Under the pieces are notes generated by a model. That model was not told where the DNA came from. It worked only from the letters and a program-made list of their open reading frames with translations, and did no database searches. A program made the translations under genes and the position numbers. A stretch of 64,000 nt of DNA, from the IMG/VR virus record IMGVR_UViG_3300033153_007973, positions 1 through 64,000 of that record, one strand, 5' to 3'. Shown here one piece after another: positions 3,601-64,000 of this stretch (positions are counted from its first letter, which is position 1; each line of letters starts with the position of its first letter).

Positions 3601-4234
3601 CTGCTACATCTCTAGCTTTTAGACGGCTAGGAATATACTCCATTCTGAGCGAGTTTTCGTTGGATACTATTCTTTGAAGCATACCCTGACTGATATTCTC
3701 ACATGCAAACTGATACAGCTTGGAGACTACTTTCTCGTATATCAGGGTATTCTTCCTTACGAGGCGCCATCGGGCAGCATTGTAGCACGATGGTAACGTA
3801 GTTGCGATAACTTTCTTGAATTCACTGAAGTTCAGATACCTGCTCTCTGGTATCCATCCGAAGGTTTGTTTAAACCTGGCTAATTCAGCATCACTGAATA
3901 CCGCACGTTGCAGTATTCTCTCGGTAGCTGTTCCATCGAACGTAGAAGCACGATGATGCTCATGTGGAATATGAAGCATCTTCTTTTCCCAGTTGTACTT
4001 AAGAAATTGTGTAATGGATACTTCTTGGTCATGTGTGATGCATACTGGTGATAACATTACATAATACGGTGGGATCATTCGGTCGTAGTCACGTGCCACG
4101 ACTCTCGCCTTCTTCTCTCCGCGCTTGGTGTTCGCAGTGATGTCGATTTTCATTTCGCCATCTTCGAATAATACACTTAGTTGCGCAGAAGCTCCCGTGG
4201 CGAATTCAACGTGCAGGTCGTTGAAACTCGTCAT
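608..4234 (-). CDS. Single-chain DNA-directed RNA polymerase (fused, minimal beta + beta' like)
   Basis: Beta motifs in order: PFHRH..NRQVVA..TQA, GRNL..YYGYTHEDGCVIS, IGDKLADHHGNKVIVAKILPRKDMP..VDII, YFRLEQHAESK. Then beta' motifs: KTGIIR..PRVIRSCHAVIS, LISRNPAH, catalytic FDGDFDGDTM. Confidence 0.93.
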   Translation of the reverse strand: MTSFNDLHVEFATGASAQLSVLFEDGEMKIDITANTKRGEKKARVVARDYDRMIPPYYVMLSPVCITHDQEVSITQFLKYNWEKKMLHIPHEHHRASTFDGTATERILQRAVFSDAELARFKQTFGWIPESRYLNFSEFKKVIATTLPSCYNAARWRLVRKNTLIYEKVVSKLYQFACENISQGMLQRIVSNENSLRMEYIPSRLKARDVAGKVVLPFGAPEKIYNNEYLVMSDTQQSGKAGEIVHLSLGTKITSDGDVIAYGKYPVSWIFAHNPFHRHISPNRQVVARYTTQACELLYDEPPLMLNPEADMNDEPEFRPHGRNLLAARMEYYGYTHEDGCVISKEASEEFITIVKHYDIFKARDAELAVQPLRINPAEMIQKFRSAVNTLDAYVNRGHLGKCKAGPMRSSLQRTAIVTDIRIENGDDSDENVKYIQVESSYPLRLSIGDKLADHHGNKVIVAKILPRKDMPKINDQPVDIIVPPYVGKRCCPSRILEEMYSIYARKTTQGKMPLLANDISFKDATKKLKEVKLPREALVVDWTNGSWYENVGYGWVRYFRLEQHAESKAKASRDVLMDYRGVAPRGKGMYTLADVMFSLYSVNADELIKEIVLEVRKTQAEEATIDHMQCFGFTLEGGFIKKSRNGFLVPKSQMDGIVIDTAIDRTALTAETDIVESELRERTVLDPRLLKSNGYVRVPKDMKLILGAFARSINVPSYDPTQFERNARMGRDKVKTEDVYVCSDGEMYIRVPKTLKAHMLNNGSFTVSDVQNALNTLLVYFQNFEKHKAGGYDNPWIERSMITRSNQMFNMVMNGIAKRLFRKTGIIRMLAFPRVIRSCHAVISGNPQLDMTTCEIPIRLFKKWCASADFRKSYMIPEDDWMDLTTGSINSILKRQKARCLISRNPAHQVNNVAGMRMLVWKGNTIRFNPALVTVFDGDFDGDTMIAYAPLGAKAKADLSKIWIAKYFNMLSCSKALKGLKISPRENLMKRKVDFRFSMSTGTSENWRDIRDRYSKEKNADFNRYMKGRVSIEHIVKGQAAAAAEFRFMKEGAANAGNIGNIMRNIMVQDHGRVGITYANDLYHSLAQPALNSKNSEGQKATLDIVTNMLRSLEAVPRQELQDELSKLVRLPETAQKVVESMFKGGKWQSGVSVICARTTPVAHSIMSGGVISLHRAAAQGDDGSIVSLFLQMASRSNTMVMSDTSK

Positions 4235-9350: not shown

Positions 9351-10493
9351 TTATTCGTAATCACGAATTATGCCGACTGGAAACTGAGGAACTGCCTTGC
9401 CATTTCCATCGGTACTACTAGTAATTGTCTGGTATCGTACCGTTAGTTGTTTACCGAGGTATGTGCCTTCTCCAGCTTTGAGCATTTCTTGACGATAAAG
9501 AAGAGTTCCTTTTGGGCGAACATTGAATTCTGCACCATCTTTAGTCTTACATTTAAACATAATACAGGTATAATGAATTCCATTTATGTCTTGAGTCTCA
9601 GACTCTACGCCTATGATTTTATATTCTTTCTCTTCCATATCTTTTTTCTTGAGTAAATCATTGCTTCTGTGACCATAAAGGTATTCAGATGCAGCATTAC
9701 GGATGATCGTGCCTTCGAAGCCTTCTTTGATGAAGTCTTTATGGAATTTCTCCATATCGGCTTCAGTTTTACATGGTTCAGTAGCCACGGCTCTGAGGGG
9801 ATTCTTCACCGCTCCTTGCCAACTACTTTTGCTACCCCATCTGTGTTCAAACCTACCTGTATCTGGAGTTGCATCATCGAATATCCAGTATTCGAGTGTT
9901 TGGGTATCTTCGCGAGCTTTCTTGGTTGCTGAGGCAATTCTCTGAAGGCTCCATCCATGATAATAGAGCTCACCATCTAGAGTTTGTCCGGGTCTCATGA
10001 TTTCTTTCAGGCGTTCTATGAGCTTCTTATTCTCTTTCATAACGGCATAGTAGTCCTTACCGTTACGACTGGTCATAGTCAAGCTACCATCATCATTCAT
10101 GGTGGTCATGCAGCGAACGCCATCAAGCTTTGGTTGGACATATGCTGGCCATGTTATATGTTTCTTGCGTTCTTTGTACTTATGTGCTAACATTGGGCGT
10201 GTGGAGATATGCTTTTCGGCGTCCTTCATAGATTCTGTATACTCTTTGCGTTCCTTCTTGTGTGTCCAAGATGCTTCTGCTTCAAGATATGCTTGCTCGA
10301 GGGGTGTAGTGGCGTTTGACTTACCAATATTCTTTCCCTCTGTAATGGTTTTGCTACGTTCGATCATCTTACCATCGACTTTGCCATTATTGGTAACAAT
10401 AATTGCATACTTACCGACACTTGCCACGCGGATGGACCATTGCTTGATTCCTCCATCCTTGGACTTTGCATAGAGTATTGGAAACTTAGTCAT
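9351..10493 (-). CDS. ATP-dependent DNA ligase
   Basis: PMLA, QPKLDGVRC, LDGELY, FEGTIIR, RSNDLLKKK, TVRYQ, PQFPV. Confidence 0.93.
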   Translation of the reverse strand: MTKFPILYAKSKDGGIKQWSIRVASVGKYAIIVTNNGKVDGKMIERSKTITEGKNIGKSNATTPLEQAYLEAEASWTHKKERKEYTESMKDAEKHISTRPMLAHKYKERKKHITWPAYVQPKLDGVRCMTTMNDDGSLTMTSRNGKDYYAVMKENKKLIERLKEIMRPGQTLDGELYYHGWSLQRIASATKKAREDTQTLEYWIFDDATPDTGRFEHRWGSKSSWQGAVKNPLRAVATEPCKTEADMEKFHKDFIKEGFEGTIIRNAASEYLYGHRSNDLLKKKDMEEKEYKIIGVESETQDINGIHYTCIMFKCKTKDGAEFNVRPKGTLLYRQEMLKAGEGTYLGKQLTVRYQTITSSTDGNGKAVPQFPVGIIRDYE

Positions 10494-10896
10494 AGTAATT
10501 ATCCTCTTCTTTTGTGGTCTCTTCCACGATAGTTTTCTGTCCTTTTCTTTCGTGAGATCTTAGCGTATTCGTAATATGTGCACCGAGAGTTGCATATCGT
10601 TCATTGGTTGAGCATGCGAGAATCCAGCCATCATCCATGGAGAAGATCTTGCTTTCGATCTCCATTGACTCCTTGTTTACGTAGGAAATCTTGTAAGATA
10701 CCTGATCATCTTCTGTATGGTAGAATCGCTTCTCTTCACCAGGTGATCTTGCTGCGTTGGTAAAGCACCAGTTGGCTTTTCCGACTGGTCCTTTTCCATA
10801 TTCTATCTTGTGGTTATCTCCGCACGTGAGACAGCCAATGAGAAAGATTCCGCATAGGAAACCGATGAGTCCGCCAGCCCAGAATTCTCCGTCCAT
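10486..10896 (-). CDS. Hypothetical membrane-anchored protein
   Basis: N-terminal hydrophobic helix. Confidence 0.55.
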   Translation of the reverse strand: MDGEFWAGGLIGFLCGIFLIGCLTCGDNHKIEYGKGPVGKANWCFTNAARSPGEEKRFYHTEDDQVSYKISYVNKESMEIESKIFSMDDGWILACSTNERYATLGAHITNTLRSHERKGQKTIVEETTKEEDNYYD

Positions 10897-11486
10897 TATT
10901 TCTTCTCCTTCTTTGTTATAACCTCATCGACGAGGCCATACTTGACTGCTTCCTCGGCAGTCATGTAATTATTTCTCTCAGTATCGATGGTGATCTTCTC
11001 GATTTTATGACCTGTATGATATGCCAGAATTTCGTCGAGCTTTCTCCTGGTCTTTTTCATCTCCTCGGCTTCGATCATGACATCTGTTTCCTGTCCGGAT
11101 GCGCCGCCAGCCACCTGGTGAATCATTACTTTTGCATTGGGTAGGATCTTACGTTTACCCTTAGCGCCCGCGGTCAGGAGAAGTGACCCCATAGAAGCAG
11201 CCATACCGATGCAGAGAGTACATACATCTGCCTCGATATATTGCATAGTATCATAAATGGCTAATCCCTCGGAGACAATACCACCCGGTGAATTGATATA
11301 GAAGAAGATATCTTTCTTGGGATCCTCAGCTTCAAGGAACAGAAGCTGCGCTGTGATCAATGCAGAGGAAACAGATTCAACTGCCCCATGAAGCATGACT
11401 ACTCGTTCTTTAAGCAGTCTGGAGAAGATATCATAGGATCGTTCACCTCTGCTGGTCTGTTCGATTACGACTGGTACGAGGTTCAT
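10896..11486 (-). CDS. clpP: ATP-dependent Clp protease proteolytic subunit
   Basis: [54 protein letters not shown]. Confidence 0.97.
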
Positions 11487-12039: not shown

Positions 12040-12774
12040 TTAGTTATAAGGATGGAATGGCAGCTGTTCTTTAAAGTCATTGTATCTAACTCTGCTGACA
12101 ATCGTTCCTATTTGTTCTTCTGTTACTCGAGTATTACGAGATAATGGTTGACTATCGTATACATATTTGAGAATGGCATCCATCTCAGCATAAGTCATTC
12201 CGATGTCACCTTCATCTGTCTGATCCTTCCATAGTTCAGCAGTTGCTGGTCTATCGATAATCTCTTCAGGTACTTTGAGAATTTTCGCCATCTCATATAC
12301 GTCTGTTTTGTAGACATTCCAGAGAGGAGCAATATCTTCTGCACCATCACCATGAAGAGTATAGTATCCTAGCATTCTCTCGGTCTTATTGCTTGTACCG
12401 AGTACGATTGATTGATGGGCTTTAGCCTGATCATATAGACAAATCATGCGCACTCTGGCCATGATGTTGCCTTTACGTATTAAACTGAGATCTGTATTAA
12501 GGTCTGCACATGCATTTACTGCATGTGAGATAGGTATGGTCATGTGATTTACATGCATCTGTTCTGCGAGGCGACCTGCAATAGTGGTTGATGATGTACG
12601 AGTATACGGTAAGCTGTATGTTCGTACACAGTCATATCCTATGGCCTTCACTGCCAACATAAGACAGACCGCTGAGTCCAAGCCTCCGGAGAGACCCAGA
12701 ACCACTCCTTGCATGTCTCCTACTTTTTCTACGATAAACTTTGTGAGTTCATCTATCTTATATTCTATATTCAT
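12040..12774 (-). CDS. nadE: NH3-dependent NAD+ synthetase
   Basis: VVLGLSGGLDSA, GNIMARVRM, VLGTSNKTE..LGYYTLHGDG, PATAELW..QTDE. The ORF-track start overlaps a tRNA; true start likely 12774. Confidence 0.93.
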   Translation of the reverse strand: MNIEYKIDELTKFIVEKVGDMQGVVLGLSGGLDSAVCLMLAVKAIGYDCVRTYSLPYTRTSSTTIAGRLAEQMHVNHMTIPISHAVNACADLNTDLSLIRKGNIMARVRMICLYDQAKAHQSIVLGTSNKTERMLGYYTLHGDGAEDIAPLWNVYKTDVYEMAKILKVPEEIIDRPATAELWKDQTDEGDIGMTYAEMDAILKYVYDSQPLSRNTRVTEEQIGTIVSRVRYNDFKEQLPFHPYN

Positions 12775-12794
12775 CTCATATCCTCCCAGATATG

Positions 12795-12866
12795 CAGCCG
12801 GTGTTGGAATCGAACCAAACGTTCTCAGGATCAAAACCTGATGTCCTACCATTGAACGAACCGGCT
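12795..12866 (-). tRNA. tRNA-Gln(TTG)
   Basis: AGCCGGT/ACCGGCT acceptor, TCAGG-TTTTGAT-CCTGA anticodon arm, TTCGATT T loop. Confidence 0.9.
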
Positions 12867-12868
12867 AT

Positions 12869-14023
12869 TTATGCTCCTGCCTTGAAATTATAGATAGGCT
12901 TAACAAACTTCTTGACCTCGACGGTGTCCTCCATTGCCTTGATAATCATATCTTTATCTTTGTATGCGCCTGGAGCTTCATCGAGAGTGTTCTTTGTTGC
13001 TGATGTTGTAAATACGCCGGCATCCTTCATGCCTGCCTGCATGTCTTCTAGGGAGAGCTGTTCCTTAGCTCTCTTCCTGGAGAGGACTCGGCCGGCACCA
13101 TGTGGTGCTGAGAAGTTCCAGTCCTTATTACCTTTGCCCTTACCAAGAATTAAGCCATCCTTCATATTAAATGGAATGACTACTTCTAGATCCTTAGATG
13201 CATTAATAGCACCCTTGCGGATGATACCAGCATGTGTATCTATATAGTTATGTACTGAATGAATCTGATGTCGTGGTTCGAGACTACACCCCTTTTGCAG
13301 ATGTTCCAGAATCTTCTTAGTTAGTAGTTCTCGATTGATTTGTGCGAAGGTTGTAGCAACTCGCATGTCTTCTAGATACTCTTTAGATCCAAATTCCTCT
13401 GTGAGGAACTCGAGACGGTGATATGCAGCACCAATGAACATCTTCTTCATTGCTTCTTTGGCTTTGTTCTGGTGGTGCATGCAGATATCATTACCAAACT
13501 TTCTGGATCCTGAGTGTATCGTGAGCCATTTCTGATCTTCCTCATCGATGCCTATCTCAATGAAGTGGTTCCCACCACCTAGGCTACCCATTGCATGGAG
13601 GTTTCTGTTAGTGTCTGTCTTCATGCGAGTACCAACTTCTGTGATTCTCTCCATGAGAGGGCCTAAGATGCCTCTGGGATTTGGTGTCTTAGCGTTTACA
13701 CTGAAACCGCTTGCGATGCTATTATGAATAAAGTTGTCAAGCTTCTCGAGGTTGATATCGTCATCATTTAGTTTCGTGGAGAGCACGCCACATCCGATAT
13801 CTACACCCACAATGCAAGGAATGACATATTCATTCGTGGTCATAGTGAATCCAATACAGCTACCCATACCAGCATGACAATCAGGCATAATTACGATATT
13901 GGACTTTGCAAATGCAGGATGGTTAAGGAAGCCATAAATCTGAGTAGTGACAGATTCTTCCAGATGAGATTCATCTGGAAGCATGATCTTAGCTACGTTG
14001 TGCTTTGCTTTGATTACGAACAT
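12869..14023 (-). CDS. rtcB: RtcB RNA ligase (3'-phosphate/5'-OH)
   Basis: IMPDCHAG, VGVDIGCG, GSLGGGNHFIE, IHSGSR, HNY, RKGA, SAPHGAGR, DEAPGAYK. Confidence 0.96.
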   Translation of the reverse strand: MFVIKAKHNVAKIMLPDESHLEESVTTQIYGFLNHPAFAKSNIVIMPDCHAGMGSCIGFTMTTNEYVIPCIVGVDIGCGVLSTKLNDDDINLEKLDNFIHNSIASGFSVNAKTPNPRGILGPLMERITEVGTRMKTDTNRNLHAMGSLGGGNHFIEIGIDEEDQKWLTIHSGSRKFGNDICMHHQNKAKEAMKKMFIGAAYHRLEFLTEEFGSKEYLEDMRVATTFAQINRELLTKKILEHLQKGCSLEPRHQIHSVHNYIDTHAGIIRKGAINASKDLEVVIPFNMKDGLILGKGKGNKDWNFSAPHGAGRVLSRKRAKEQLSLEDMQAGMKDAGVFTTSATKNTLDEAPGAYKDKDMIIKAMEDTVEVKKFVKPIYNFKAGA

Positions 14024-18300: not shown

Positions 18301-18831
18301 CTATATGATTTTCTTGTTGAAGAACTTGTATGCTTCTTGGTGTCGCCATTTGCTGATGGCCTTATAATACTCTTGTCGTCCTTTATGAGTGATAATTGTT
18401 ACCGGATACTTCTTGATCTTGTTCTCGCACCACAGTAAGAGCAAGCGACCGGTTCGGCCATTTCCATCCACAAATGGATGTGTTACTTCGAATGCATAGT
18501 GTACATTCATGCAGTCAATTGGCTTCTTTACTTCGTTGGCTGCCTTCACTACTCTCTCCAGCATACCAAGAATCTTGGTAGGAGGCGGACAGCTAAAGCC
18601 TCCTACTCTAACAGCAACAGGTCTGATAAGTCCTGTATAATGAGGAGGTAAGATCCCTTTCATCATGGTCTTATGCCAGTTAAGGATGTCCTGAATTATC
18701 AGGTTTTTCTTGGTTGTCAATGCTTTTGCTGCAGCTTTTAAGTGTTGGTCGAACTCCGGTGTTCCTGGATCCTCAAAGATGTCCTCGATAGCATTTGACT
18801 CACTAACTAGTTCTTCTATTCTGTTTTCCAC
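18301..18831 (-). CDS. Fic-domain protein
   Basis: HPFVDGNGRTGR canonical motif; ESNAIE. Confidence 0.93.
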   Translation of the reverse strand: MENRIEELVSESNAIEDIFEDPGTPEFDQHLKAAAKALTTKKNLIIQDILNWHKTMMKGILPPHYTGLIRPVAVRVGGFSCPPPTKILGMLERVVKAANEVKKPIDCMNVHYAFEVTHPFVDGNGRTGRLLLLWCENKIKKYPVTIITHKGRQEYYKAISKWRHQEAYKFFNKKII

Positions 18832-25613: not shown

Positions 25614-26342
25614 TCAGCCCGTCGCGAGCTTCTTTGCTTTCTTTCTGTCTGTTCGCCATATTTCTCCTCGTGTTTTGGCTACAGTTTGAGCAAGTTTTAC
25701 GTACTCATTTCGTCCATCCTGAAAGCAGCCACTATTGATTACCTTAACTGATCCCATTTGTTTTACAAATGGTTTTTCGTGTGTATGTCCGTAGACTATG
25801 ATGTCTAATCGGTTGCCCTTTGCAAATTTATAAGCTTTATCTCTGAATGGTGTGTAATCTTTGTCGAGTCCACTGGATAGTTCCTTGCCCTTCTTCCAGC
25901 CAATTGCCATTTCGATTGGTTTCCATATCCATCTGACTGCCCATTTACATGCTTTCTTCTTGAGTCCGCGGTACTCGAGAGTAGGATCATGAATGATACC
26001 GACCTTTAGATCACCCCAAATAATGATTAGAAGATCGATTCCGATTGATAGTCCATCATCAGTATCATCATGGTTTCCATTGATGATCATTTGCTCCATG
26101 GCCCAGCTGGTTTCTTCTGGCCATGCTTTATATATATCTTCTATATCGTATTGCCATGCTTCAAACCAATCGCCACAAATGGTCCAGAACCACTTTTTGC
26201 GTGCTCCTGTCATCATCCATTCTAGACCAGCTTTACTGGCAACAGCATTATCTGCTGAGTCTTTTCCGCCTAAATGAGCATCTGATGCTACATATATAGG
26301 CTTCTTTGGGTCGTACTCTACGATCTTTGTTCGAATCTTCAT
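25614..26342 (-). CDS. Calcineurin-like metallophosphoesterase
   Basis: SDAHLG, GDWFE, GNHD, YGHTH, NSGCF. Confidence 0.85.
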   Translation of the reverse strand: MKIRTKIVEYDPKKPIYVASDAHLGGKDSADNAVASKAGLEWMMTGARKKWFWTICGDWFEAWQYDIEDIYKAWPEETSWAMEQMIINGNHDDTDDGLSIGIDLLIIIWGDLKVGIIHDPTLEYRGLKKKACKWAVRWIWKPIEMAIGWKKGKELSSGLDKDYTPFRDKAYKFAKGNRLDIIVYGHTHEKPFVKQMGSVKVINSGCFQDGRNEYVKLAQTVAKTRGEIWRTDRKKAKKLATG

Positions 26343-33355: not shown

Positions 33356-34408
33356 TTATTTTCCATGAACGATATCATTGAACTTTTCGTTTGCGTCATA
33401 TCCCCATTCTCGACCGATTTTACACTCTTCTTCTTCATCAACCTTGAAGATATCAGCTGTGCACGTGGGTCCTTTAGGGATGAAACTTCCGGTACCGATA
33501 CCATCAAACGCATCTTTGACATGCATAAAGGCTTCTGTCTTCACGGCGTCAAATCCTGAGGATACAAAGATCTTAACGCCTTTTCCACCTGCTGCATCGA
33601 GTTCACTGCGTAAACGAGCAACGGCATTCATAGTAACACCTTTCTCTAGGGCATTTGAGGAACTGTCAATCTGAGCATAGTTCTCACCACAAGTGTCGGT
33701 GCGTACTCCATAAAGCTTGTCTCCACAGTGTTTAAGGAGTGATAAAGTATCATCAATCTCCTTATTATTATAATCGATCAGGGCAATAAACTTGTCATCT
33801 GGGAGAGCTTTCATGTATGCATCTGCCATCTTGATATAATCTCCGCGGAAGATAGCAATCAAAGCATGAGGTGTGGTTCCTATTCCTTTACCAGAAGGTA
33901 GGTCAATTTGATTGATAATGTTACGTATATCATCGGCACGGTTACTGAGATAATTCTGTGCTTCTGCTCCTGTATCAGTACTGACTCCTCTGATTCCGCC
34001 AACGTATCCACCATATGATGCTAGTGCAACAGATTCTGCACCATAGAGATGACGTGCAGAGAAATCAAGAACTGGTTTCCCATCTGCTGCGTTCACAATT
34101 GCTTTGGCATGATATGCACAGTAACAAGGTAGAGCGCACCATTGAAGGTAAAGAGTCTCGAGCTCTACGATGTTCTGGAAGAATCCTTTTACAATCATCA
34201 TAGTATCACCAGATTTAAACTCAGTTCCAGTGGGAAGGATATCGATATCTGACATGGGTGCTAGTGTTCTGATCAGTGCCGCTGCAGGTTCGAGTGCAGC
34301 AATACCATTAGAGCGACCAAATATACGATATGATACTCGTGGATTCATCCTGGTTTCCTCAGCAACAATTCGGGATTTGCTGAAGTACTTATCTGTGAAT
34401 GGATTCAT
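33356..34408 (-). CDS. pncB: Nicotinate phosphoribosyltransferase-like (short type II PRTase)
   Basis: TDKYF, ELET, DFSARH, GTTPHALI, LIDY, GVRTDT, IFVSSGF, GIGTGS, TADI. Confidence 0.82.
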   Translation of the reverse strand: MNPFTDKYFSKSRIVAEETRMNPRVSYRIFGRSNGIAALEPAAALIRTLAPMSDIDILPTGTEFKSGDTMMIVKGFFQNIVELETLYLQWCALPCYCAYHAKAIVNAADGKPVLDFSARHLYGAESVALASYGGYVGGIRGVSTDTGAEAQNYLSNRADDIRNIINQIDLPSGKGIGTTPHALIAIFRGDYIKMADAYMKALPDDKFIALIDYNNKEIDDTLSLLKHCGDKLYGVRTDTCGENYAQIDSSSNALEKGVTMNAVARLRSELDAAGGKGVKIFVSSGFDAVKTEAFMHVKDAFDGIGTGSFIPKGPTCTADIFKVDEEEECKIGREWGYDANEKFNDIVHGK

Positions 34409-34962
34409 TTGCTGGACCCATTTTGCACAGTTATACCGTATAGGGTCAACATACGTTGAAGAGCAGCTTCCCCTGCTTCTGGTATCAGATCATCTACGAG
34501 ATCTTTGTGAACAATGATTTTCGGGAGCTTCTTATCTTGGTTCTTCATCTCATTGATGATCGAGGTAACGACATCATGGACACAAATGCTTGTGCATACA
34601 CCAGTTATATGGATTTCGGGATTTTCCTTACCCTCACACCAGTCTATGATGTTATTAACAATGCAAGCAGATGTATATCCCTTCTTGACAAAGCGAATAA
34701 TGGCTTTGTTCTCCGGAATAGCATCTTCAATAGGTTCAACGATCTTCGTACCTTCTGTCTCTTCGATACAGTGTTCTGGGAACAGCTTGAATTCAGGATC
34801 ACCTTTGCTGTGTCTGTCCATGGTGAGCATAATATCACCATCAAATGCTTTGACGAAATTGGCTACACGACCTTGAAGTTCTTTCGTGTCGTGACCAATA
34901 TACAACTTACCATCCTTATTTAGAAAGTCATTCTGCATATCTACTACGATTAGTAATTTCAT
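34405..34962 (-). CDS. pncA: Nicotinamidase / pyrazinamidase
   Basis: VVDMQNDF...G.L, MDRH, FPEHC...TEG, K, GVCTSICV. Confidence 0.88.
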   Translation of the reverse strand: MKLLIVVDMQNDFLNKDGKLYIGHDTKELQGRVANFVKAFDGDIMLTMDRHSKGDPEFKLFPEHCIEETEGTKIVEPIEDAIPENKAIIRFVKKGYTSACIVNNIIDWCEGKENPEIHITGVCTSICVHDVVTSIINEMKNQDKKLPKIIVHKDLVDDLIPEAGEAALQRMLTLYGITVQNGSSK

Positions 34963-41508: not shown

Positions 41509-42609
41509 CTACTCATCATGGCGTAAAAGCCAGTTCGGATTGACCACCTTGAACGAAAGTCGGCCTATATGGTCATCTCTGAGACTCTCATTGACTGATC
41601 TGATGACAATACCTTCTCTGATGTGATCGGGATAAATCTTGCTCATTCCTTTGGATATCTCGACCATTTCCTCTACTGAATTAGGTAGAGTAGTACTGTT
41701 CTCGAGTATGGGTACATGTTCAAATCCATATCTTTGGCAGAACTTAAGCATATCTTCAAAATCCAAGTACTTGGATGTTTGAAGGTCTAGAACGTTATAT
41801 ACAAAGACTTTGTGTTCCTTAAGTCTGTACTTGTTCTTCTGGATGCCAGGTCCGCAAAGCTCACCTTGTATGCAGATATCTTGGTTTACGCTACGTAGTT
41901 TCTCTTCGATACTATCTCTAAGTGCTACTACCCAGAATGTGTTTTGCTTCTTGGGTTTAGGTTTTATGAATAAGCTCTTGAACCATGCAGGAAAGCCTTT
42001 CTTCTCAATATCTGGAAGAATCTGCATATTCCTACTAGCAACACCGAATTCATCATCTCGGATCCAATATGATGCCGAGGAACCATCAAGTTTCTCTGTA
42101 ATATAGAATTGTTTATCGCAGTGTCGTCTAATAATTCCAGGTATTGTCTGAATTCTGTCTTCGTCTGTCTTTGGGATAAATCCTGGGCGTGTTTTCGTCC
42201 GGCGTCCGCTGAGCATAGCTGGCATCTGGGGCTCCCACTTGAGAATGCCCAGTACTTTGGTGACATCATCTCCAATCTGTAGTGCCTTGTCGCCTTCGGA
42301 TTGATCGATGATGCTCATAGGAAATGCAATACCCTGTGAGACTTGTTTACGCAGCTTGATGGTCTTAATTCGATATCCGCGGTCTTTGAGGAACTCGAAT
42401 TCAGGTCGTGGCGGTAGGATGCTATCTATTTCACAATAAACGCACTTGCTGCCGATTTTGAAGTCGTCCTTCTTGTTGATGACGACTTTCCACCCGAGGA
42501 TCGTCGCGACTTCGATTTGGTTCGCGTTCGGGATAGCTTTGATCGCTTTGATTTCTTGGATCGAGGCGAGCTTTCTGCTGATTTCGTTGTTACTGTTGTC
42601 TGTGACCAC
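41509..42609 (-). CDS. RNA ligase, Rnl2 / DRB0094 family
   Basis: RKLASIQ.I..I..I.NA..IE, VYCEIDS.LP, SQG, KTDEDRIQ, TEKLDGSS, QGELCGPGIQKN, EGIVIR, SFKVVN. Confidence 0.92.
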   Translation of the reverse strand: MVTDNSNNEISRKLASIQEIKAIKAIPNANQIEVATILGWKVVINKKDDFKIGSKCVYCEIDSILPPRPEFEFLKDRGYRIKTIKLRKQVSQGIAFPMSIIDQSEGDKALQIGDDVTKVLGILKWEPQMPAMLSGRRTKTRPGFIPKTDEDRIQTIPGIIRRHCDKQFYITEKLDGSSASYWIRDDEFGVASRNMQILPDIEKKGFPAWFKSLFIKPKPKKQNTFWVVALRDSIEEKLRSVNQDICIQGELCGPGIQKNKYRLKEHKVFVYNVLDLQTSKYLDFEDMLKFCQRYGFEHVPILENSTTLPNSVEEMVEISKGMSKIYPDHIREGIVIRSVNESLRDDHIGRLSFKVVNPNWLLRHDE

Positions 42610-56920: not shown

Positions 56921-59659
56921 TTAATCTTTCACGTGCTGGTTACGCTTGATCAGATGGTGTGTACCTGCCGCCCGATCAGATATGATACTCAATGTCCCAG
57001 GAGTCAGATTCAAGCGCTTCTCTTCACGCTCGAGGTCTGACTGGATAGCACCCAGGATCTTTTCGTTCTCTTCCTCCTTTCTAACGTCGACCGTAGCCAG
57101 CCAATATAGCCAGCTACGATCAATCACCCGCCTAGCACATGCCAGGACACGCGGGTCGAATCCTGACAGACCACCATACAGCCCCTTGTTATTGCTGCTG
57201 GTGTAACTGATGATACAGATCATGATCATAACCTGCATCTCCTCCAAGGCCACACCGAACTCCTTGGAGAACACGTGAGCTCCAGTATGGAACAACGCAG
57301 CCACTTTCTGCTGACTTGTTTCCATATTGGCATGTGCTCTCTTATCGGACTGCCAAATATCCATAGCCCGACAAATCATGGAGCGATACTTCTCGCGCAT
57401 CACTCCATCGGTGTACATCACTTTCTCCGATAGCTGCTTACCATCCTTGGTGGGTAGAGCAGCCTGTCGACCAGTGATTGGATTGATCCCGATCCGCTCT
57501 GCAACCTTATGCATAATAGGATCAGTCTTCACCATCTCACGTGCCTTGTTATGAATATGGTTCTCAGGTGTTCCGAGTTTCATATCAACTAGAGGCTCGA
57601 AGATCGCCCGCAGGAACGGATCTGAGCGATCGATGCGATGGTGATTACCAGCGATGGACATGAGCTTATCCATATCCACCTCACCAGTGTTAGCGTTAAC
57701 ACAACCAAGCTCATCCAGACCTCCGATGAGTTGCTCCCTGTTTGTATCAACAACCACAATCGTCCGACCGCCTTTCTGCTTGCGATTGAACGACTCGGAA
57801 GCGATCATATGTAACAGTGACCGCGGCCGAAGTGTGAATTTGGGATCGATCTTCTTAGCTGCATCAGTAAACGCGAAGACTGATGCTTTATAATCGATCT
57901 TCCGGACGGAGTGCTTAATTCCATCCAGAAAGCTCTGCAGGAAATGTAGTTTCATCCCCCGCAGGAAATACTGGACATCGTCTCTATAGAAGATGCCCAG
58001 ACGCAGGAATCCCTCTTGGAACCTGCGAAACAGCTGAGTTGCCCGCCCAATCATGAGCGAGTCGAACCCATATCCAGTTGTTGCTACCTGAATCAGCATA
58101 TCAGCAACTGGCTTAGTCACCTTGCATACTTTGCGAAGGTGTCCAACATCATTATTCTCATCCTCATGTACAACCTCAGGAGGACAGATCTCATCCTCGG
58201 GACGCCATGCTAGATTTCTAACGAGCCCGAAGACTTCATCAGGGTACACAACCACGATATCACCATCGAAGTCACCACCCAACTGCCCCATCAGGATAGG
58301 ATTCACCCTGATGCTGTCTCCCTCGAACCCCACCACCTTCACAGTAACGACGGTGTCAGGGAACACAGGATGCCTGGCGATGATGATCTTATCACCAAGC
58401 TCGAAGCCCTTGCCCTTGAAACATGTGGGCAGGATCACATTAAGCGCCCCGATGAGATGTTCAGGTACTGAGTATGAGAAGCGCCCAGCCGTAACTCCGC
58501 GAGTGATCAACCCACGGATTAACGGATAGATCATGCTCCGTGCTTTCTCGAGCATAGATCCAAACTGGGTGCTATCTACTTCACGTAACGCATCCATCAC
58601 TCCCTGTAGAGTGGCAGAGAATTTGCGATGGTCTTCTCCTTCCTCAGGTGCAACACCACGTGACATGACGTACCGTGCCAGGTGGTGATCACCAGTAGAC
58701 ACCGCAGCTGCAAACTCAGTAGCTCTTGTTTTGAGCCAGGTGAGTGGTTTATCCATATCCATCCATCTGGCCTTTGTCAGGAGACTCAAAGATCCGCGAG
58801 CTCCCTTATTCTTCAGATATGCATCCCCAGACTTATGGAGATAGATATCCATGAACAGGGTTCCCAATTCCCCATCCCAGCTGCCTATACCAATAACCTT
58901 CATGGTATCGACAGCTATCTTCATCTCTTTGTCAACATAACGGGAAGTTAACGCACACCCATCCATATTGATAGAGTTGGGTAGTACATAGAACTCTACC
59001 CCCATCAGTACCCCACTCTGCAGAGGTGTGTTACAATACTTGCCTAACTTGAACAGCTTCTGCCCAAGTAGGTTCTTCAGTGTGTCCGGAGTTACGAACA
59101 CAACGCCCCGCTCTGCCATTGCTAGCAGTGGGTCTATCATCTTCACATCTACGTGCTTGGAGACATGTTCTAATATCCAACGCCTCATGTACTTGTGTGA
59201 ACGCCGCTGGATAACACCCTTGAAGATCACAAGTACCTTCAATGATATCCCCAATACCTTCTTAATGGCACTGGAGACCGAACAGTTGATCGTAGCCATG
59301 AGCGGGGCCTGCCCGAACTCAGGTACGACACGCATCTTACCGGGGAACATGTGACGCCTGTTCTCCTTCAGATGTGTCACCATCCCTCCAATGCTCTCCA
59401 GTGCATCATCACACTGAAGACCAAGGAAGCCTTCTCTTGCTTGCACAAAGGCACCACCACATGCCTTCAGTACACGGGCCAGGATACTATCCTGAACCGA
59501 GACGGTGAGCTCCGACCCCTCGATCGGAATGTCCACTACAGGGTAGAGCCGGTCGCCCGACACCTCATCCTGTACTGGGTGTGCCACCATCCATGCCCCG
59601 AAGAACCTCTTCTTCAGGGAGGACAGTGCACCATCCAAGACACTGTTTATCTTGTTCAT
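56921..59659 (-). CDS. Second single-subunit double-barrel RNA polymerase (YonO / cellular RdRP-like)
   Basis: NMDGCALTS; IIIARHPVFP...SIRVNPILMGQLGGDFDGDIVVVY; FLDGIKH; AGGAGG SD. Confidence 0.8.
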   Translation of the reverse strand: MNKINSVLDGALSSLKKRFFGAWMVAHPVQDEVSGDRLYPVVDIPIEGSELTVSVQDSILARVLKACGGAFVQAREGFLGLQCDDALESIGGMVTHLKENRRHMFPGKMRVVPEFGQAPLMATINCSVSSAIKKVLGISLKVLVIFKGVIQRRSHKYMRRWILEHVSKHVDVKMIDPLLAMAERGVVFVTPDTLKNLLGQKLFKLGKYCNTPLQSGVLMGVEFYVLPNSINMDGCALTSRYVDKEMKIAVDTMKVIGIGSWDGELGTLFMDIYLHKSGDAYLKNKGARGSLSLLTKARWMDMDKPLTWLKTRATEFAAAVSTGDHHLARYVMSRGVAPEEGEDHRKFSATLQGVMDALREVDSTQFGSMLEKARSMIYPLIRGLITRGVTAGRFSYSVPEHLIGALNVILPTCFKGKGFELGDKIIIARHPVFPDTVVTVKVVGFEGDSIRVNPILMGQLGGDFDGDIVVVYPDEVFGLVRNLAWRPEDEICPPEVVHEDENNDVGHLRKVCKVTKPVADMLIQVATTGYGFDSLMIGRATQLFRRFQEGFLRLGIFYRDDVQYFLRGMKLHFLQSFLDGIKHSVRKIDYKASVFAFTDAAKKIDPKFTLRPRSLLHMIASESFNRKQKGGRTIVVVDTNREQLIGGLDELGCVNANTGEVDMDKLMSIAGNHHRIDRSDPFLRAIFEPLVDMKLGTPENHIHNKAREMVKTDPIMHKVAERIGINPITGRQAALPTKDGKQLSEKVMYTDGVMREKYRSMICRAMDIWQSDKRAHANMETSQQKVAALFHTGAHVFSKEFGVALEEMQVMIMICIISYTSSNNKGLYGGLSGFDPRVLACARRVIDRSWLYWLATVDVRKEEENEKILGAIQSDLEREEKRLNLTPGTLSIISDRAAGTHHLIKRNQHVKD

Positions 59660-59936: not shown

Positions 59937-59997
59937 TGGCCCATGTGGGGACTCGAACCCCAATGCACATACCACGTGCACCTGCCTAGCATGGGCC
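59937..59997 (-). ncRNA. D-armless tRNA-like RNA
   Basis: GGCCCATG/CATGGGCC-A acceptor; TGCAC-GTGGTAT-GTGCA; TGGGG-TTCGAGT-CCCCA. Confidence 0.6.
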
Positions 59998-60494: not shown

Positions 60495-60522
60495 TTGACA
60501 GATCCACAGCATATGCTACTAT
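60495..60522 (+). promoter_or_regulatory. sigma70-type promoter at the strand switch, driving the plus-strand operon
   Basis: TTGACA-16-TACTAT with TGn extension. Confidence 0.55.
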
Positions 60523-60698
60523 GTGCTTGACCTTTAGTTGAAGTGGATAGAGGCATGGGAGCATGCTTCTGAGGACTTCATAGTCTGAAGATGGAGGGTA
60601 CCGTAGATTACGGCCGTAATCGCGGGAGAGTAGATCCAGACTGCACAGCCACCCTTGTTGCTCTAATGGTCATGCAATATATTCCGGGAGGGGATATT

Positions 60699-61079
60699 AT
60701 GCCAATAACAGAAGCAAATATATACTTTAATGTGTCGGGTTATCCTATTAACAGTACATCTATACATCCTGGAGATGGACGCCCTATTATAGAATACGTC
60801 AAGGAAAGCTACAATGTGTCCTTTCCTGTGTCAGGTGGACCACATGCTGATTGCGGATATGATATGTGGGAGGTAGACATCTCATGCCCTTACTGTGGTA
60901 ATCATTTCAAGACATGTCGGAGAACTGACATAAATGCACCACGTATAACATGTCATAAGTGTAGGAATAATTTCGATGTATATAATGATATGATCAGAGA
61001 AGAACTGGCCAAGCAGAATGGAGAAAACGCGGACCCTTCTATAGTAGAGGTAATCAAAGATGGAATCATCACAGTGTAA
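60699..61079 (+). CDS. Zn-ribbon protein with C-terminal VIKDGIIT tag
   Basis: CPYC..CHKC; GGAGGGG SD before 60699. Confidence 0.7.
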   Translation: MPITEANIYFNVSGYPINSTSIHPGDGRPIIEYVKESYNVSFPVSGGPHADCGYDMWEVDISCPYCGNHFKTCRRTDINAPRITCHKCRNNFDVYNDMIREELAKQNGENADPSIVEVIKDGIITV

Positions 61080-61356
61080 ACATCCAGGGGATGGTTTTTA
61101 TATTGTCAGGAGAGTATCGAGATACTCTAAGGAGGATGGATATATTATAATACTGGGGTGTCCTCATTGTGGTAAGGAATTGCAGATGACGGGATATAAA
61201 GATCAGCGTATTATACGTACAGTATGTGTTGAGTGCAACGAACCGATCATGATATACAGGAACATGGTACAAGCAACGATACACAGACAACGCGGAGAAA
61301 CACTCTCGCCAGACAGTGTGAATGTAGTCAGGAAGGGACTTATTAGTGATTCTTAG
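61060..61356 (+). CDS. Zn-ribbon protein with VVRKGLIS tag
   Basis: CPHC..CVEC. Confidence 0.7.
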   Translation: MESSQCKHPGDGFYIVRRVSRYSKEDGYIIILGCPHCGKELQMTGYKDQRIIRTVCVECNEPIMIYRNMVQATIHRQRGETLSPDSVNVVRKGLISDS

Positions 61357-61669
61357 AGCAATACCACCTATTATACATGGTAAGAGGGTAGTTACCAATG
61401 ACATGGCTTTGCTTGTTCTCAGGTGTGATAACTGCGGGGCAGAATTCACTGTATATCATGAAACAAAGACACAAGACGAGGTTAAATGTGATGTATGTTC
61501 GGATACAGTAGTAGTTATGCCCAGACTAATGGAAGCAGCATGGGATAAGGAGAGGGGGCTGTGGGGTGAGCCGGAAGATGTACGAGTTCTAAAAACCGGT
61601 TTGATCCCTTTAGGTGAGTTAAAGGTGCAGAAGTGCCGCGAATTTATAGATCTTGTGAGGAGATCATAA
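61346..61669 (+). CDS. Zn-ribbon protein with VLKTGLIP tag
   Basis: CDNC..CDVC. Confidence 0.7.
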   Translation: MILRAIPPIIHGKRVVTNDMALLVLRCDNCGAEFTVYHETKTQDEVKCDVCSDTVVVMPRLMEAAWDKERGLWGEPEDVRVLKTGLIPLGELKVQKCREFIDLVRRS

Positions 61670-61977
61670 TGGCTATAACTATAGAGGAATATCGAGCATG
61701 GTTGGATGCAAATAATCAACATGTGAATATCGGTTCTGATCATTCACATATAGACCGGAGTATCATGAGTAACGATGCGGAGATTACTATTCCCGCTAGG
61801 ACCGTGATTGTTCCCCAGGTAGATATGGTGATGGGTGATGAGAATCAGATCATCTTTGAGTGCACGGACGGAATGGTAGTGATCTTTAATAAAAAAGATC
61901 TGAATGGTGTCTTCCCGGTGGTGGACCCCTCAAAATCCGAAATGGTGCGGTCTGGGTTGATCCCTAGTGGCGAATAA
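61669..61977 (+). CDS. Hypothetical protein with MVRSGLIP tag
   Basis: Start ATG overlaps the previous TAA; GAGGAG SD. Confidence 0.7.
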   Translation: MAITIEEYRAWLDANNQHVNIGSDHSHIDRSIMSNDAEITIPARTVIVPQVDMVMGDENQIIFECTDGMVVIFNKKDLNGVFPVVDPSKSEMVRSGLIPSGE

Positions 61978-62278
61978 TGACTATTTTGATGAGTTGATCC
62001 AGAGGACTAGAGATATGGGCAATGGACCTTCATTTATTGTTAAACATGCTAGAGCCGCCGATGATGCTGTTAATGTCGAGGTCATATGTCCACATTGTAG
62101 TAAGATTCAATATGATATGATCGTCAGAGGGATTGATGTTGGAAGATGCTGTATGCATTGCATGAGTTCAGCTACTATTAGAGCAAAGGATGTGGAACAC
62201 GCCATCAATGATTTGTTAGAACAAGATAAGCCCATGAATATGAGTGTGTTGCGTGATGGGCTTATACCGGAGGAATAA
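61967..62278 (+). CDS. Zn-ribbon protein with VLRDGLIP tag
   Basis: CPHC..CMHC. Confidence 0.7.
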   Translation: MANNDYFDELIQRTRDMGNGPSFIVKHARAADDAVNVEVICPHCSKIQYDMIVRGIDVGRCCMHCMSSATIRAKDVEHAINDLLEQDKPMNMSVLRDGLIPEE

Positions 62279-62733
62279 TGTCACAAGCAGATGCACTAGA
62301 AGCATTAATGAGGAGAAGAAATATGGCATTGACACCAGCACCACGAGCTATATCACGTAGTGAAGCAGCATACGAACGCCCACCAATGATTGCACAAAAT
62401 GCTTGGCTCCGGGTTCCAAATGGAAACGTAAAGCCGCCGGAGCCAAAAATAGATGGCCCTGATATCAGTACGAAAACGATTATCCTAGATATGATCTCTA
62501 TGGGTGTCGCTGTGCTGCGTCGGCTTTGGACCAAGAAGAAGGTATCATATGGTAATGTCGCGGCTGATGTACTGAAGACGCGTAAAAAAGAAGATGAGAA
62601 GCTGGCGATTCTGGTCAGTCCAGTTATCAGACCGGGGATTATTACACTGGATAAACTTCCAAAGAAGAGACCGCGACCGGTTCCAACTATAGATGGCATT
62701 GGCATAATGAGAGGAGATATCGATGGCGACTAA
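62278..62733 (+). CDS. Hypothetical protein with VIRPGIIT tag
   Basis: GGAGG SD; translationally coupled. Confidence 0.7.
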   Translation: MSQADALEALMRRRNMALTPAPRAISRSEAAYERPPMIAQNAWLRVPNGNVKPPEPKIDGPDISTKTIILDMISMGVAVLRRLWTKKKVSYGNVAADVLKTRKKEDEKLAILVSPVIRPGIITLDKLPKKRPRPVPTIDGIGIMRGDIDGD

Positions 62734-63028
62734 CGTAGGAGAGAATGATCCGCGTTTCCTTCAAGATATGCTCGATATACCGACGAATGAGCCAGCATGG
62801 CAGCTGGATAGTCGGGGCAATATCATAGGTATAGTTAATTGTCCGCGGGCTGTGCATTATCAGCTGGATGAGAATGGTGTGATAGATTTTAATCATACGG
62901 TTAATGTGCCGCCAGCGCTAGGAGATATATTCTCTGCTATGAATAAAGAGAATGAAGAAAAACCGGTAGTACCTGATGTTGCGCAGATAGTGCGTTCTGG
63001 ACTTATTCCTGATGATACCATTCGGTAG
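62723..63028 (+). CDS. Hypothetical protein with IVRSGLIP tag
   Basis: GAGGAG SD. Confidence 0.7.
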   Translation: MATNVGENDPRFLQDMLDIPTNEPAWQLDSRGNIIGIVNCPRAVHYQLDENGVIDFNHTVNVPPALGDIFSAMNKENEEKPVVPDVAQIVRSGLIPDDTIR

Positions 63029-63041
63029 TATAGGAGGAGAC

Positions 63042-63407
63042 ATGGGAATAGTAGTTTGCGGGCCAATGTGCATATATCGATCTGGACGTAAGTGTTCACA
63101 TGAGGATGCGCCGGATACTTTCCTCAGTAAATGGTTCCCGAAATGGTTCTCGCCCAGATGCACTGAGTGGGGTAAATTACAGGAAGACTGCGACATGCAT
63201 GAGCTTCCCCCGCGACCACCCATGCGTGGAAGAGCGATGCGAACTGAGAGGCCGGCTAATCTAGATGGTATCTCCATGCAGTTACATACGACAATGGACC
63301 CAGATGTATTCTTTGGTAAGAGGACAATGGGAGGAAAACAGTTGCAGCCAGACTCCACCAAGGTAATCAGGAAGGGACTTATCCCGGAGGATAAAAATGG
63401 CAAGTAA
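63042..63407 (+). CDS. Cys-rich hypothetical protein with VIRKGLIP tag
   Basis: AGGAGG SD before 63042. Confidence 0.7.
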   Translation: MGIVVCGPMCIYRSGRKCSHEDAPDTFLSKWFPKWFSPRCTEWGKLQEDCDMHELPPRPPMRGRAMRTERPANLDGISMQLHTTMDPDVFFGKRTMGGKQLQPDSTKVIRKGLIPEDKNGK

Positions 63408-63684
63408 AATATATTTCATGAGCGATGCACATATCGGAAATGGAGATATGATAGACAATCTGAAACTATATACTAGAGATCCAAGTAAAGAGATCTCGCT
63501 GCTTTGGGACAAGATCGCAGACCAGAAAAAGGTCTCTAGTGATCCAAATGACATGGTACTGACATATTCAGTGGGTAAGTTCGGGAAGGGGCTGAGAATA
63601 GAGGAGAAGAAGGAGAGACCGGTGATCCCTGAAATCTCGAAGACCATCAGAGATGGGATCATCCCGTTCAGCAAACTGACATAA
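63397..63684 (+). CDS. Small protein with a metallophosphoesterase-like N-terminal remnant and TIRDGIIP tag
   Basis: KIYFMSDAHIG only; remaining catalytic motifs absent. Confidence 0.65.
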   Translation: MASKIYFMSDAHIGNGDMIDNLKLYTRDPSKEISLLWDKIADQKKVSSDPNDMVLTYSVGKFGKGLRIEEKKERPVIPEISKTIRDGIIPFSKLT

Positions 63685-64000
63685 TGCCTATATCTAAGTC
63701 ACATTTTCTTGGTATTCTGAGAGAACGCCGGGACCGGCGCGAGCAAGAGAAGAGACTGGCCACACATGATGATGTATCAAAAGAGAAGAAGAGGAAGAAG
63801 CTTGCCAGGATCTCAATGACCGATGAGGTATTTATGAGATTCCTCACTGGAGAATACTACATAGATCTAGATGATGATATTGTCATAGAAAGAATGTGGA
63901 TTGAGAACCAATATGTGGAGGCCAAAATAAATATCGTTATATCAGGGGAGAGTCTGAAAGTAGGTTATACTACGCCAAATGCAAGTATCCCGGAGTTCTC
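63684..64000 (+). CDS. Hypothetical protein, partial (runs off window end)
   Basis: ATG overlaps the previous TAA; open to the end (MPISKSHFLGILRERR...). Confidence 0.55.
   Translation, partial: MPISKSHFLGILRERRDRREQEKRLATHDDVSKEKKRKKLARISMTDEVFMRFLTGEYYIDLDDDIVIERMWIENQYVEAKINIVISGESLKVGYTTPNASIPEF

Follow-up and report, generated by a model that had tools for sequence, protein, structure and literature searches.

Why should nine consecutive small genes of a phage, most of them with little in common in their main bodies, all end in the same short peptide? The genes lie on the + strand at positions 60699-63684 of the window, by which we mean the whole 64,000-nucleotide stretch of DNA analysed, which is part of the genome of an uncultured 234-kb phage. 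A sequence-only reading of the window had proposed that nine unrelated proteins carry one C-terminal tag under selection as a peptide, forming a library of variable heads with a constant docking tail. We find that the observation of a shared tag holds, although the description of the nine bodies as unrelated was overstated, and that the interpretation is supported only in part.

Each of the nine genes (g1 to g9, in order) carries the pattern P-x4-[VIMT][VIL][RK]-x-G-[LI]-I-[PTS] between 1 and 28 residues before its stop codon, and all nine tails read as first described. The expression [VIMT][VIL][RK].G[LI]I[PTS] occurs exactly nine times in a six-frame scan of the window, each time in one of these consecutive ORFs. 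The Pro sits exactly five residues before the motif in eight of nine cases, the exception being g6, which has it at -1. A 14-column profile of the tails scores the nine at 27-37 bits against at most 11 bits elsewhere in contig positions 1-73028, and a second profile, to which the two tails of the only outside relative were added, gives at most 17 bits in the 101.6 kb of the genome that was read, 43% of contig Ga0366824_1000008, its best non-tail scores being a mirror of g6 on the opposite strand and one internal site. Whether the motif is commoner than chance had been set as a test in advance, and residue-shuffled versions of the nine proteins carry it only about 1e-4 of the time each. The stricter form [VIM][VIL]R[SKD]GLIP[EDS][DGE] matches only 6 stretches in all 2.9 million IMG/VR contigs, among which only the locus on this contig was confirmed; by inspection of the pattern, four tails of the array (g4, g5, g7, and g8) fit it.

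The codons beneath the shared residues vary. The Gly is encoded by GGA four times, GGG four times, and GGT once, the Ile by ATC five times, ATT three times, and ATA once, and five different Arg/Lys codons are used. Where two tails have the same residue the codon differs in 98 of 158 comparisons (62%), so selection acts on the peptide. The annotated frame has the best coding score of the six frames for every gene, and the JGI gene calls agree, although the real starts of g1, g4, g5, and g8 are uncertain by 10-36 codons.

The genes overlap or abut, and lie behind a sigma-70-type promoter match at 60495..60522 (+), TTGACA-16-TACTAT with a TG extension and 10 of 12 consensus matches. It is the only such match with a perfect TTGACA on the + strand that lies between genes, but a consensus match alone is not proof of use. 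The first gene, g1 (60699..61079, +), encodes a Zn-ribbon protein (CPYC..CHKC) with the tail PSIVEVIKDGIITV; its ORF opens at 60591, but the likely start is at 60699 behind GGAGGGG. It is followed by g2 (61060..61356, +), a Zn-ribbon paralogue (CPHC..CVEC) with the tail PDSVNVVRKGLISDS, whose ATG lies inside the D-G codons of the g1 tail, and by g3 (61346..61669, +), a further Zn-ribbon paralogue (CDNC..CDVC) in which the tail PEDVRVLKTGLIP is followed by 19 more residues. The product of g4 (61669..61977, +; the ORF opens at 61633) has no Cys pairs and the tail PSKSEMVRSGLIPSGE, while g5 (61967..62278, +; the JGI call starts at 62015) is again a Zn-ribbon paralogue (CPHC..CMHC), with the tail PMNMSVLRDGLIPEE. 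In g6 (62278..62733, +) a basic protein (pI 10.2) without Cys carries the tail ILVSPVIRPGIIT followed by 28 more residues, and in g7 (62723..63028, +) an acidic protein with one Cys carries the tail PDVAQIVRSGLIPDDTIR. The gene g8 (63012..63407, +; alternative start 63042 behind GGAGGAG) encodes a Cys-rich protein that is not a CxxC..CxxC ribbon, with the tail PDSTKVIRKGLIPEDKNGK, and g9 (63397..63684, +) ends in PEISKTIRDGIIPFSKLT. The sequence-only reading called one of the nine a phosphoesterase remnant; this rests on a match of 17 residues (10 identical) between the N-terminus of g9 and that of the phage's own Metallophos gene (25614-26342, - strand). The next gene, g10 (63684..64000 in the window, + strand, ending at contig position 64286), overlaps the g9 stop by one base with its ATG and is the last coupled gene of the block; it encodes 200 residues, has no tail, and gave no family hit.

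Whether the tail is simply the end of an ordinary duplicated protein differs between members. The products of g1, g2, g3, and g5 are true paralogues with a shared arrangement of Zn ribbon, helix, and tail (BLASTP E 3e-9 for g1 against g2), and for these four the tail is the conserved end of a duplicated gene, so that part of the sharing is by descent. The products of g4, g6, g7, g8, and g9 show no similarity to them or to each other, no pair falling below E 0.5 by BLASTP alone, and four of them (g4, g6, g7, and g9) lack the four Cys ligands and cannot be Zn ribbons. At least six different bodies are thus distinguished at this level of comparison, with pI values from 4.3 to 10.2, widely differing lengths and compositions, and N-termini that share nothing. 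Searches of Pfam, PHROGs, and NCBIfam gave only sub-threshold generic Zn-ribbon matches for g1, g2, g3, and g5, and nothing for g6, g8, and g9.

The phage is an orphan and comparative power is therefore minimal. DNA and protein similarity searches against 50,697 deposited phages gave no match for the region, for the neighboring 912-residue protein, or for two 23-residue tails. A word-indexed search of 5.8 billion proteins with the Zn-ribbon profile, the 912-residue neighbor, and a profile including the outside relative returned only the phage itself and that relative, P0009. An exhaustive HMMER search of 1.84 billion representative proteins likewise found one true relative, P0009 (E 9e-8), the other 43 hits being generic multi-Zn-ribbon proteins without the tail, judged from the eight that were read. 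Scans of IMG/VR and the JGI metagenomes with family patterns, the strict tail pattern, and a 20-base junction pattern returned only self or chance hits, and a sister contig from a second sample differs by one base in 9.1 kb, leaving no comparative signal. Literature searches found no paper on a shared C-terminal tag in phage early proteins or on phage ClpP adaptors, and none on the samples.

What comparison there is points to the tail rather than the body as the conserved part. P0009 keeps 9 of 12 tail residues of g1 (75%) against 26% of the body, and tail identity exceeds body identity in 14 of 15 pairs of Zn-ribbon family members. In the relative, however, two of three tail-coding segments are not in a clean frame with a gene, one being broken at a run of six G and one having a TGA seven codons upstream. 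With a 6-sequence alignment AlphaFold folds g2 residues 13-82 with confidence (pLDDT 70-87) and leaves residues 83-98, on a polar linker, unpacked and below 50, although low pLDDT from so shallow an alignment is weak evidence of disorder. A Foldseek search of the g2 model against PDB and BFVD gave nothing below E 0.09, the tail profile had no hit among PDB sequences at E up to 10, and a model of g7 without an alignment was uninformative (pLDDT 39).

Our preferred reading, to which we give a probability of about 0.45, is that the tail is a short linear docking motif: a polar, flexible linker, a Pro, and a two-part hydrophobic segment split by [RK]-x-G, a pattern suggesting a small beta-hairpin. 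It would let a set of small, probably early-expressed proteins with different bodies bind one common partner, whether a host or a phage hub protein. In this view the array grew by tandem duplication of a Zn-ribbon gene whose tail overlaps the next gene's translation start, the bodies later being replaced or captured while the tail was kept. The analysis itself establishes that the tag exists, that it is conserved at the peptide level and more than the bodies are, that it is predicted not to pack on the body, and that it occurs on bodies without detectable similarity; that it binds anything, that all nine bind the same thing, and that expression is early (which rests on the promoter consensus alone) are inferences from sequence. 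The placement of the motif 1 to 28 residues from the end indicates that no free carboxylate is needed. On the other side, the tail matches no known docking or degron motif tested and no partner was identified, so that candidates can be named by context only: the phage ClpP (10896-11486) or a host Clp machine, and, by position, the tail-less g10. The sequence-only reading had suggested substrate adaptors for a phage Clp ATPase and ClpP, a virion-packaging or ejection signal, or a recruiter to an RNAP or host complex; ClpP is confirmed, but no Clp ATPase was found among the 30 largest ORFs of the window.

A bolder form of this reading, possible but unlikely on present evidence, is that the array is a library of modular adaptors whose heads each grasp a different host (or phage) target while the constant 13-residue tail tethers them all to a single machine, for example a protease built around the phage's ClpP with a host unfoldase, so that the phage would redirect one host machine against many targets at the start of infection. 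We know of no described phage system of this form. Short docking peptides shared by unrelated proteins are how cells and viruses wire many functions onto one hub, as with clamps, Clp adaptors, and encapsulin cargo, and nine neighboring genes sharing one such peptide, with at least six different heads, would be an unusually clean natural example in a phage. The tag could then serve as a bait for the hub, and the heads would point to nine targets or activities of host takeover; if the partner is a protease or chaperone, this would be a new way for phages to reprogram host proteostasis. The main limit is that the phage is uncultured and has almost no relatives, its host being probably a proteobacterium.

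Several described systems resemble the array in architecture or concept. One is the tether of E. coli SspB, in which a folded head and a long disordered linker with Pro precede a short C-terminal peptide with a hydrophobic pair and a basic residue, ending ..PPRGGRPALRVVK, which docks SspB on ClpX. No [LIV][RK][VIL][VIL][KR]-COOH occurs in any of the nine tails, there being only an internal VRVLK in g3, SspB is one protein and not a nine-gene set, and no ClpX-type gene was found in the parts of the phage scanned. Encapsulin cargo proteins, unrelated but encoded together, share a C-terminal peptide of roughly 10 residues that docks after a flexible linker on an HK97-fold shell, but no G[ST]L[KR] core occurs here, no encapsulin gene lies alongside, and the array is far from the capsid module and looks early. 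Several unrelated proteins of phage T4 carry a short, often C-terminal, hydrophobic peptide on a flexible linker that plugs into the ring-shaped clamp, as do bacterial and archaeal clamp-binding and PIP motifs; no QL[SD]LF, QLxLx[LF], or Qxx[LIM]xx[FYW] occurs in any of the nine proteins, the tails have no aromatic residue, and the carriers are small, probably early proteins and not replication or transcription factors. The GroES mobile loop (GGIVLTGAA, contact pattern G_IVL_G_A) likewise has a Gly followed by aliphatic residues in a flexible segment that binds as a hairpin (PMC9720267), and GroES-loop fusions have been used to improve the soluble expression of a recombinant enzyme (PMC4017763), but the tail has two aliphatic residues after the Gly, not three, followed by Pro/Thr/Ser, no tail matches G.[IVLM]{3}.G or G[IVLM]{3}[TP], and there is no Cpn10 hit at E up to 1. 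A resemblance to the ClpP-docking loop of Clp ATPases (an aliphatic residue, Gly, then Phe or Leu) also failed, since the residue before the invariant Gly is D, K, S, T, or P, never aliphatic, and [LIVM]G[FL] is absent from all nine proteins. In concept the array recalls poxvirus ankyrin/PRANC and other viral substrate-adaptor families, whose variable heads share a constant C-terminal element that docks on one host machine; there the element is a folded F-box-like domain in a eukaryotic virus, here a 13-residue peptide in a phage.

Of the alternatives, the one that survives best, though we consider it unlikely, is that the tail is a shared degradation or timing signal, recognized by a host or phage protease system so that the proteins of this early block are cleared together once no longer wanted. 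The phage carries a full-length cellular-type ClpP (PF00574, E 1.4e-76), 58-66% identical to cellular ClpPs mostly of Pseudomonadota, the tag is near the C-terminus of every member, and it persists even on g9, a body that looks like a gene fragment, which fits a signal independent of head function. However, 19 and 28 residues follow it in g3 and g6, no tail ends in the AA-COOH of an ssrA-type ClpX degron, the SspB tether is not matched, no unfoldase gene was found in the parts scanned, and known ClpX and Lon degrons do not look like this.

Almost as well placed, and also unlikely, is the possibility that all nine descend from one tandemly duplicated gene whose bodies diverged beyond recognition, the tail being kept as a self-association element, a beta-hairpin making homo- or hetero-oligomers among the nine. 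The four demonstrable paralogues, the tandem arrangement with the boundary of the duplication unit inside the tail where the next start codon lies, and the pattern of two hydrophobic pairs around [RK]-x-G (a hairpin by inference) are in its favor, but the absence of the Cys ligands from g4, g6, g7, and g9, the resemblance of the g9 N-terminus to a different gene of the same phage, the wide differences in length, charge, and composition, and the lack of a hairpin in the AlphaFold monomer speak against it.

More doubtful still is a packaging signal loading these proteins into the capsid for co-injection, by analogy with encapsulin cargo or the T4 capsid targeting sequence. The encapsulin-like architecture fits, and the capsid module lies on the same strand 17-30 kb downstream, but the array is separated from it by opposite-strand genes, its neighbors have no capsid-like family hit, the only capsid-like gene being the major capsid candidate at contig 89.7-91.0 kb, and it sits behind a host-type promoter match, as do the metabolic genes on the other strand. 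The T4 signal, moreover, is N-terminal and cleaved by the prohead protease, whereas the element shared here is C-terminal.

Finally, the view that the peptide is a by-product of nucleotide-level constraints, either ribosome-binding sites and start codons of the next gene or a recombination linker between gene cassettes, is already largely refuted by the codon data, for although tail codons do double as translation signals at some junctions, where part of the conservation may be at the nucleotide level (at g1/g2, GAGG in the V-E-V codons with the ATG in the D-G codons, a type of junction conserved over 20 fixed bases in the relative, where tail codons carry the Shine-Dalgarno (SD) and start codon at both junctions read; at g2/g3, AGGAAGGGA in the R-K-G codons as the SD; and in g5 and g8, CCGGAGGA in the P-E-E/D codons as the SD), the motif lies outside the next gene's ribosome site, 13-88 nt from its start, and is still conserved in g3, g6, and g9 and probably in g4 and g7 (if the later starts are real), the mean nucleotide identity of the 24-nt core is only 56%, and the Pro at -5 lies outside any ribosome site.

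The window is the first 64 kb of a 234,008-bp uncultured viral contig (IMGVR_UViG_3300033153_007973, which is JGI Ga0366824_1000008), of which we examined the sequence up to 101.6 kb, and window coordinates are equal to contig coordinates. The phage has no DNA or protein match among deposited phages. The window encodes a full-length cellular-type ClpP (10896-11486, - strand; PF00574, E 1.4e-76), which is 58-66% identical to cellular ClpPs, mostly of Alpha-, Beta- and Gammaproteobacteria, and weakly suggests a proteobacterial host. No Clp ATPase was found among the 30 largest ORFs of the window.

Nine consecutive + strand ORFs between 60591 and 63684, referred to here in order as g1 to g9, end in a common C-terminal peptide, so that the observation made in the sequence-only reading held. 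The regular expression [VIMT][VIL][RK].G[LI]I[PTS] occurs nine times in a six-frame scan of the window, each time in one of these ORFs, and lies 1, 2, 19, 3, 2, 28, 5, 6 and 5 residues before the stop, with Pro five residues upstream in eight of the nine. A 14-column profile of the tails, a search that had been named beforehand as a check, scores the nine tails at 27-37 bits, against at most 11 bits for any other site in six frames of contig positions 1-73028. A second profile, to which the two tails of the only relative were added, gives at most 17 bits for non-tail sites up to 101.6 kb, these being an antisense mirror of g6 and one internal site. The mirror belongs to a 147-residue antisense ORF (62262-62705, - strand) that reads VIIPGLIT opposite the g6 tail and has a lower coding score (0.13) than g6 (0.21). 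Shuffled versions of the nine proteins contain the regular expression about once in 10,000, and a strict variant of the motif matches six stretches in the whole of IMG/VR, a pattern that four of the array tails (g4, g5, g7 and g8) fit. All nine annotated frames have the best codon-usage score of the six frames under a model trained on long genes of the other strand, and the JGI gene calls agree apart from the starts of g1, g4, g5 and g8. A tenth gene (63684-64286) starts on the last base of the g9 stop and has no tail.

The proposal that selection acts on the peptide rather than on a DNA repeat agrees with the codons used at the conserved positions, which vary: Gly is encoded by GGA in four tails, GGG in four and GGT in one, Ile by ATC in five, ATT in three and ATA in one, and Arg or Lys by five different codons. 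The mean nucleotide identity of the 24-nt core is 56%, and where two tails have the same residue they use different codons in 98 of 158 comparisons. There is nevertheless a real complication at the nucleotide level, since at the g1/g2 junction the V-E-V codons contain GAGG and the D-G codons contain the ATG of g2, at the g2/g3 junction the R-K-G codons AGGAAGGGA are the Shine-Dalgarno, and in g5 and g8 the P-E-E/D codons give GGAGGA. In g3, g6 and g9, however, and in g4 and g7 if the later starts are correct, the motif lies well away from the next start and is equally conserved. Overlap with translation signals explains how the tail travels with duplications but does not explain why the peptide is kept.

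The bodies of the nine proteins had been described as unrelated, which is only partly correct. Four of them, g1, g2, g3 and g5, are paralogues that share CxxC..CxxC, a following helix and then the tail, and BLASTP of g1 against g2 with the tails removed gives E 3e-9. The other five show no similarity to these or to each other (best E 0.5), four of them lack the Cys ligands, and their pI ranges from 4.3 to 10.2. What had been called a phosphoesterase remnant rests on the first 17 residues of g9, which match the N-terminus of the phage's own metallophosphoesterase (10 of 17 identical) and suggest a captured gene fragment fused to a tail. No curated family matches any of the bodies above threshold.

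Relatives of the array are almost absent from the databases searched. Word-indexed searches of 5.8 billion proteins found only the query itself, whereas an exhaustive profile search of 1.84 billion representatives found one true relative, a 109-residue protein (P0009, E 9e-8); among the other hits, the eight that were read are generic Zn-ribbon repeats without the tail. P0009 lies on a 739-bp ENA contig (ERZ23498405, scaffold_1324369) that holds three consecutive tail-coding segments, the first reading ..PTKVEVIRNGLIKG followed by a stop, the second being P0009 itself, ending ..SKVEVVKDGIIRRKG followed by a stop, and the third a g2 orthologue (about 53% identity) reading ..PDHVEVIKPWGDRHQG.. 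in which a run of six G breaks the motif; with five G it would read VIKPWGIAIKG followed by a stop. The first segment has a TGA seven codons upstream in its frame, so that only P0009 has a cleanly attached tail, and the other two may reflect either assembly error or decay of the peptide with retention of the translation start, the junction DNA (GTAGAGGTA..ATGG) being conserved with the g1/g2 junction. P0009 shares 9 of 12 tail residues with g1 against 26% of the body, and in 14 of 15 pairs within the Zn-ribbon family the tail is more conserved than the body. The last motif position is K/R in the relative rather than P/T/S. Further scans of IMG/VR and JGI metagenomes gave only self or chance hits, and a sister contig from a second sample (3300033148) differs by a single base in 9.1 kb, C versus A at window position 63112, which coincides with a different start call for g8 (131 versus 121 residues).

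An AlphaFold2 model of g2, computed with the 6-sequence family alignment, predicts a body of five strands plus a helix (residues 13-82, pLDDT 70-87), while the tail (residues 83-98) scores below 50 and has no secondary structure and no packing. A Foldseek search with the model finds nothing significant in PDB or BFVD, and a model of g7 made without an alignment was unusable. The 15 residues before each tail are rich in K, E, D, N, Q, G and P, which fits a flexible linker.

The array would be transcribed from the intergenic gap at the strand switch, where the best sigma-70-type match in the region, TTGACA-16-TACTAT with a TG extension, is found at 60495-60522; it is the only such + strand match with a perfect TTGACA in the window that lies between genes. 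On the - strand, perfect 12-of-12 consensus promoters (TTGACA-16/17-TATAAT) occur at 26389 and 17498, suggesting that much of that block is read by host polymerase although the phage has its own polymerase genes. The array is therefore probably read by host polymerase as an early block, an inference from consensus matches only. The intergenic region before the array also holds a tRNA-like element (59938-59997, - strand) whose Rfam matches are below threshold (mascRNA-menRNA 25.9 bits, tRNA-Sec 22.6 bits) and which is not called by ARAGORN.

We compared the tails with known docking and targeting motifs and found in them neither the bacterial clamp motif or the PIP box, nor the [LIVM]G[FL] loop that docks Clp ATPases on ClpP, the GroES loop pattern (G_IVL_G_A; PMC9720267), the encapsulin GSL[KR] core, the ssrA AA-COOH end or the LRVVK-COOH end of E. 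coli SspB. The tail profile likewise finds nothing in PDB sequences. What the array does share with SspB, encapsulin cargo and T4 clamp binders is the architecture of head, flexible linker and short peptide.

The best-supported reading, to which we give a probability of about 0.45, is that the tail is a short linear docking motif that ties differently built small proteins to one partner, and in this respect the earlier interpretation of variable heads on a constant docking tail is supported in part. The existence of the shared peptide is established by the analysis and is statistically overwhelming, whereas its function, including any binding to a partner, is inferred from sequence and from comparative support limited to one short fragment. 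The phage ClpP and the tail-less tenth gene are candidate partners by context alone. As far as we could find the feature is undescribed; it belongs in concept to the known class of modular docking or targeting peptides but matches no known member among those compared. Of the alternatives, a shared degron for timed clearance of the proteins is unlikely but survives best, closely followed by a self-association hairpin in a family diverged from one ancestor, which is also doubtful, and a capsid-loading signal appears improbable. A by-product of nucleotide-level constraints is the least likely of all, and some probability must be left to explanations not considered. The likely origin of the array is tandem duplication of a Zn-ribbon gene whose tail overlaps the next start, followed by replacement of bodies upstream of a retained tail, as the g9 chimera hints.

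A 1208-residue protein (608-4234, - strand) carries a beta-type domain (Rpb2_6, residues 285-568, E 1.6e-19) and a beta-prime-type domain (Rpb1_2, residues 899-963, E 8e-11) in one chain and is a fused minimal multisubunit-type RNA polymerase. Next to the array, a 912-residue protein (56921-59659, - strand) contains GGDFDGD, which resembles the metal-binding motif of two-barrel RNA polymerases, but it has no Pfam hit and no homologue other than itself in 5.8 billion proteins or in phage records. RtcB (12869-14023), an RNA ligase with an OB domain (41509-42609), an ATP-dependent DNA ligase (9351-10493) and 11 tRNA genes between 5261 and 33341, all on the - strand, look like a tRNA supply and repair kit. 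A set of NAD-related genes comprises NAD synthase (12040-12852, E 1.6e-63), a weak QRPTase_N/NAMPT-like protein (33356-34408) and an isochorismatase-family (nicotinamidase-like) protein (34405-34962), all on the - strand, together with a 74-residue NMN-transporter-like fragment (contig 65724-65954, + strand), and possibly serves NAD salvage against NAD-depleting defences. The phage also encodes a Fic/DOC family protein (18301-18831, - strand; E 1.1e-15). The head module lies on the + strand at contig positions 80654-92444 and consists of a large terminase (phrog_2, E 4.6e-38), a 757-residue protein, a portal-like protein (faint Portal_Mu), 668- and 386-residue proteins and a capsid-like protein (weak Phage_capsid_4), followed by a Big_5 domain protein.
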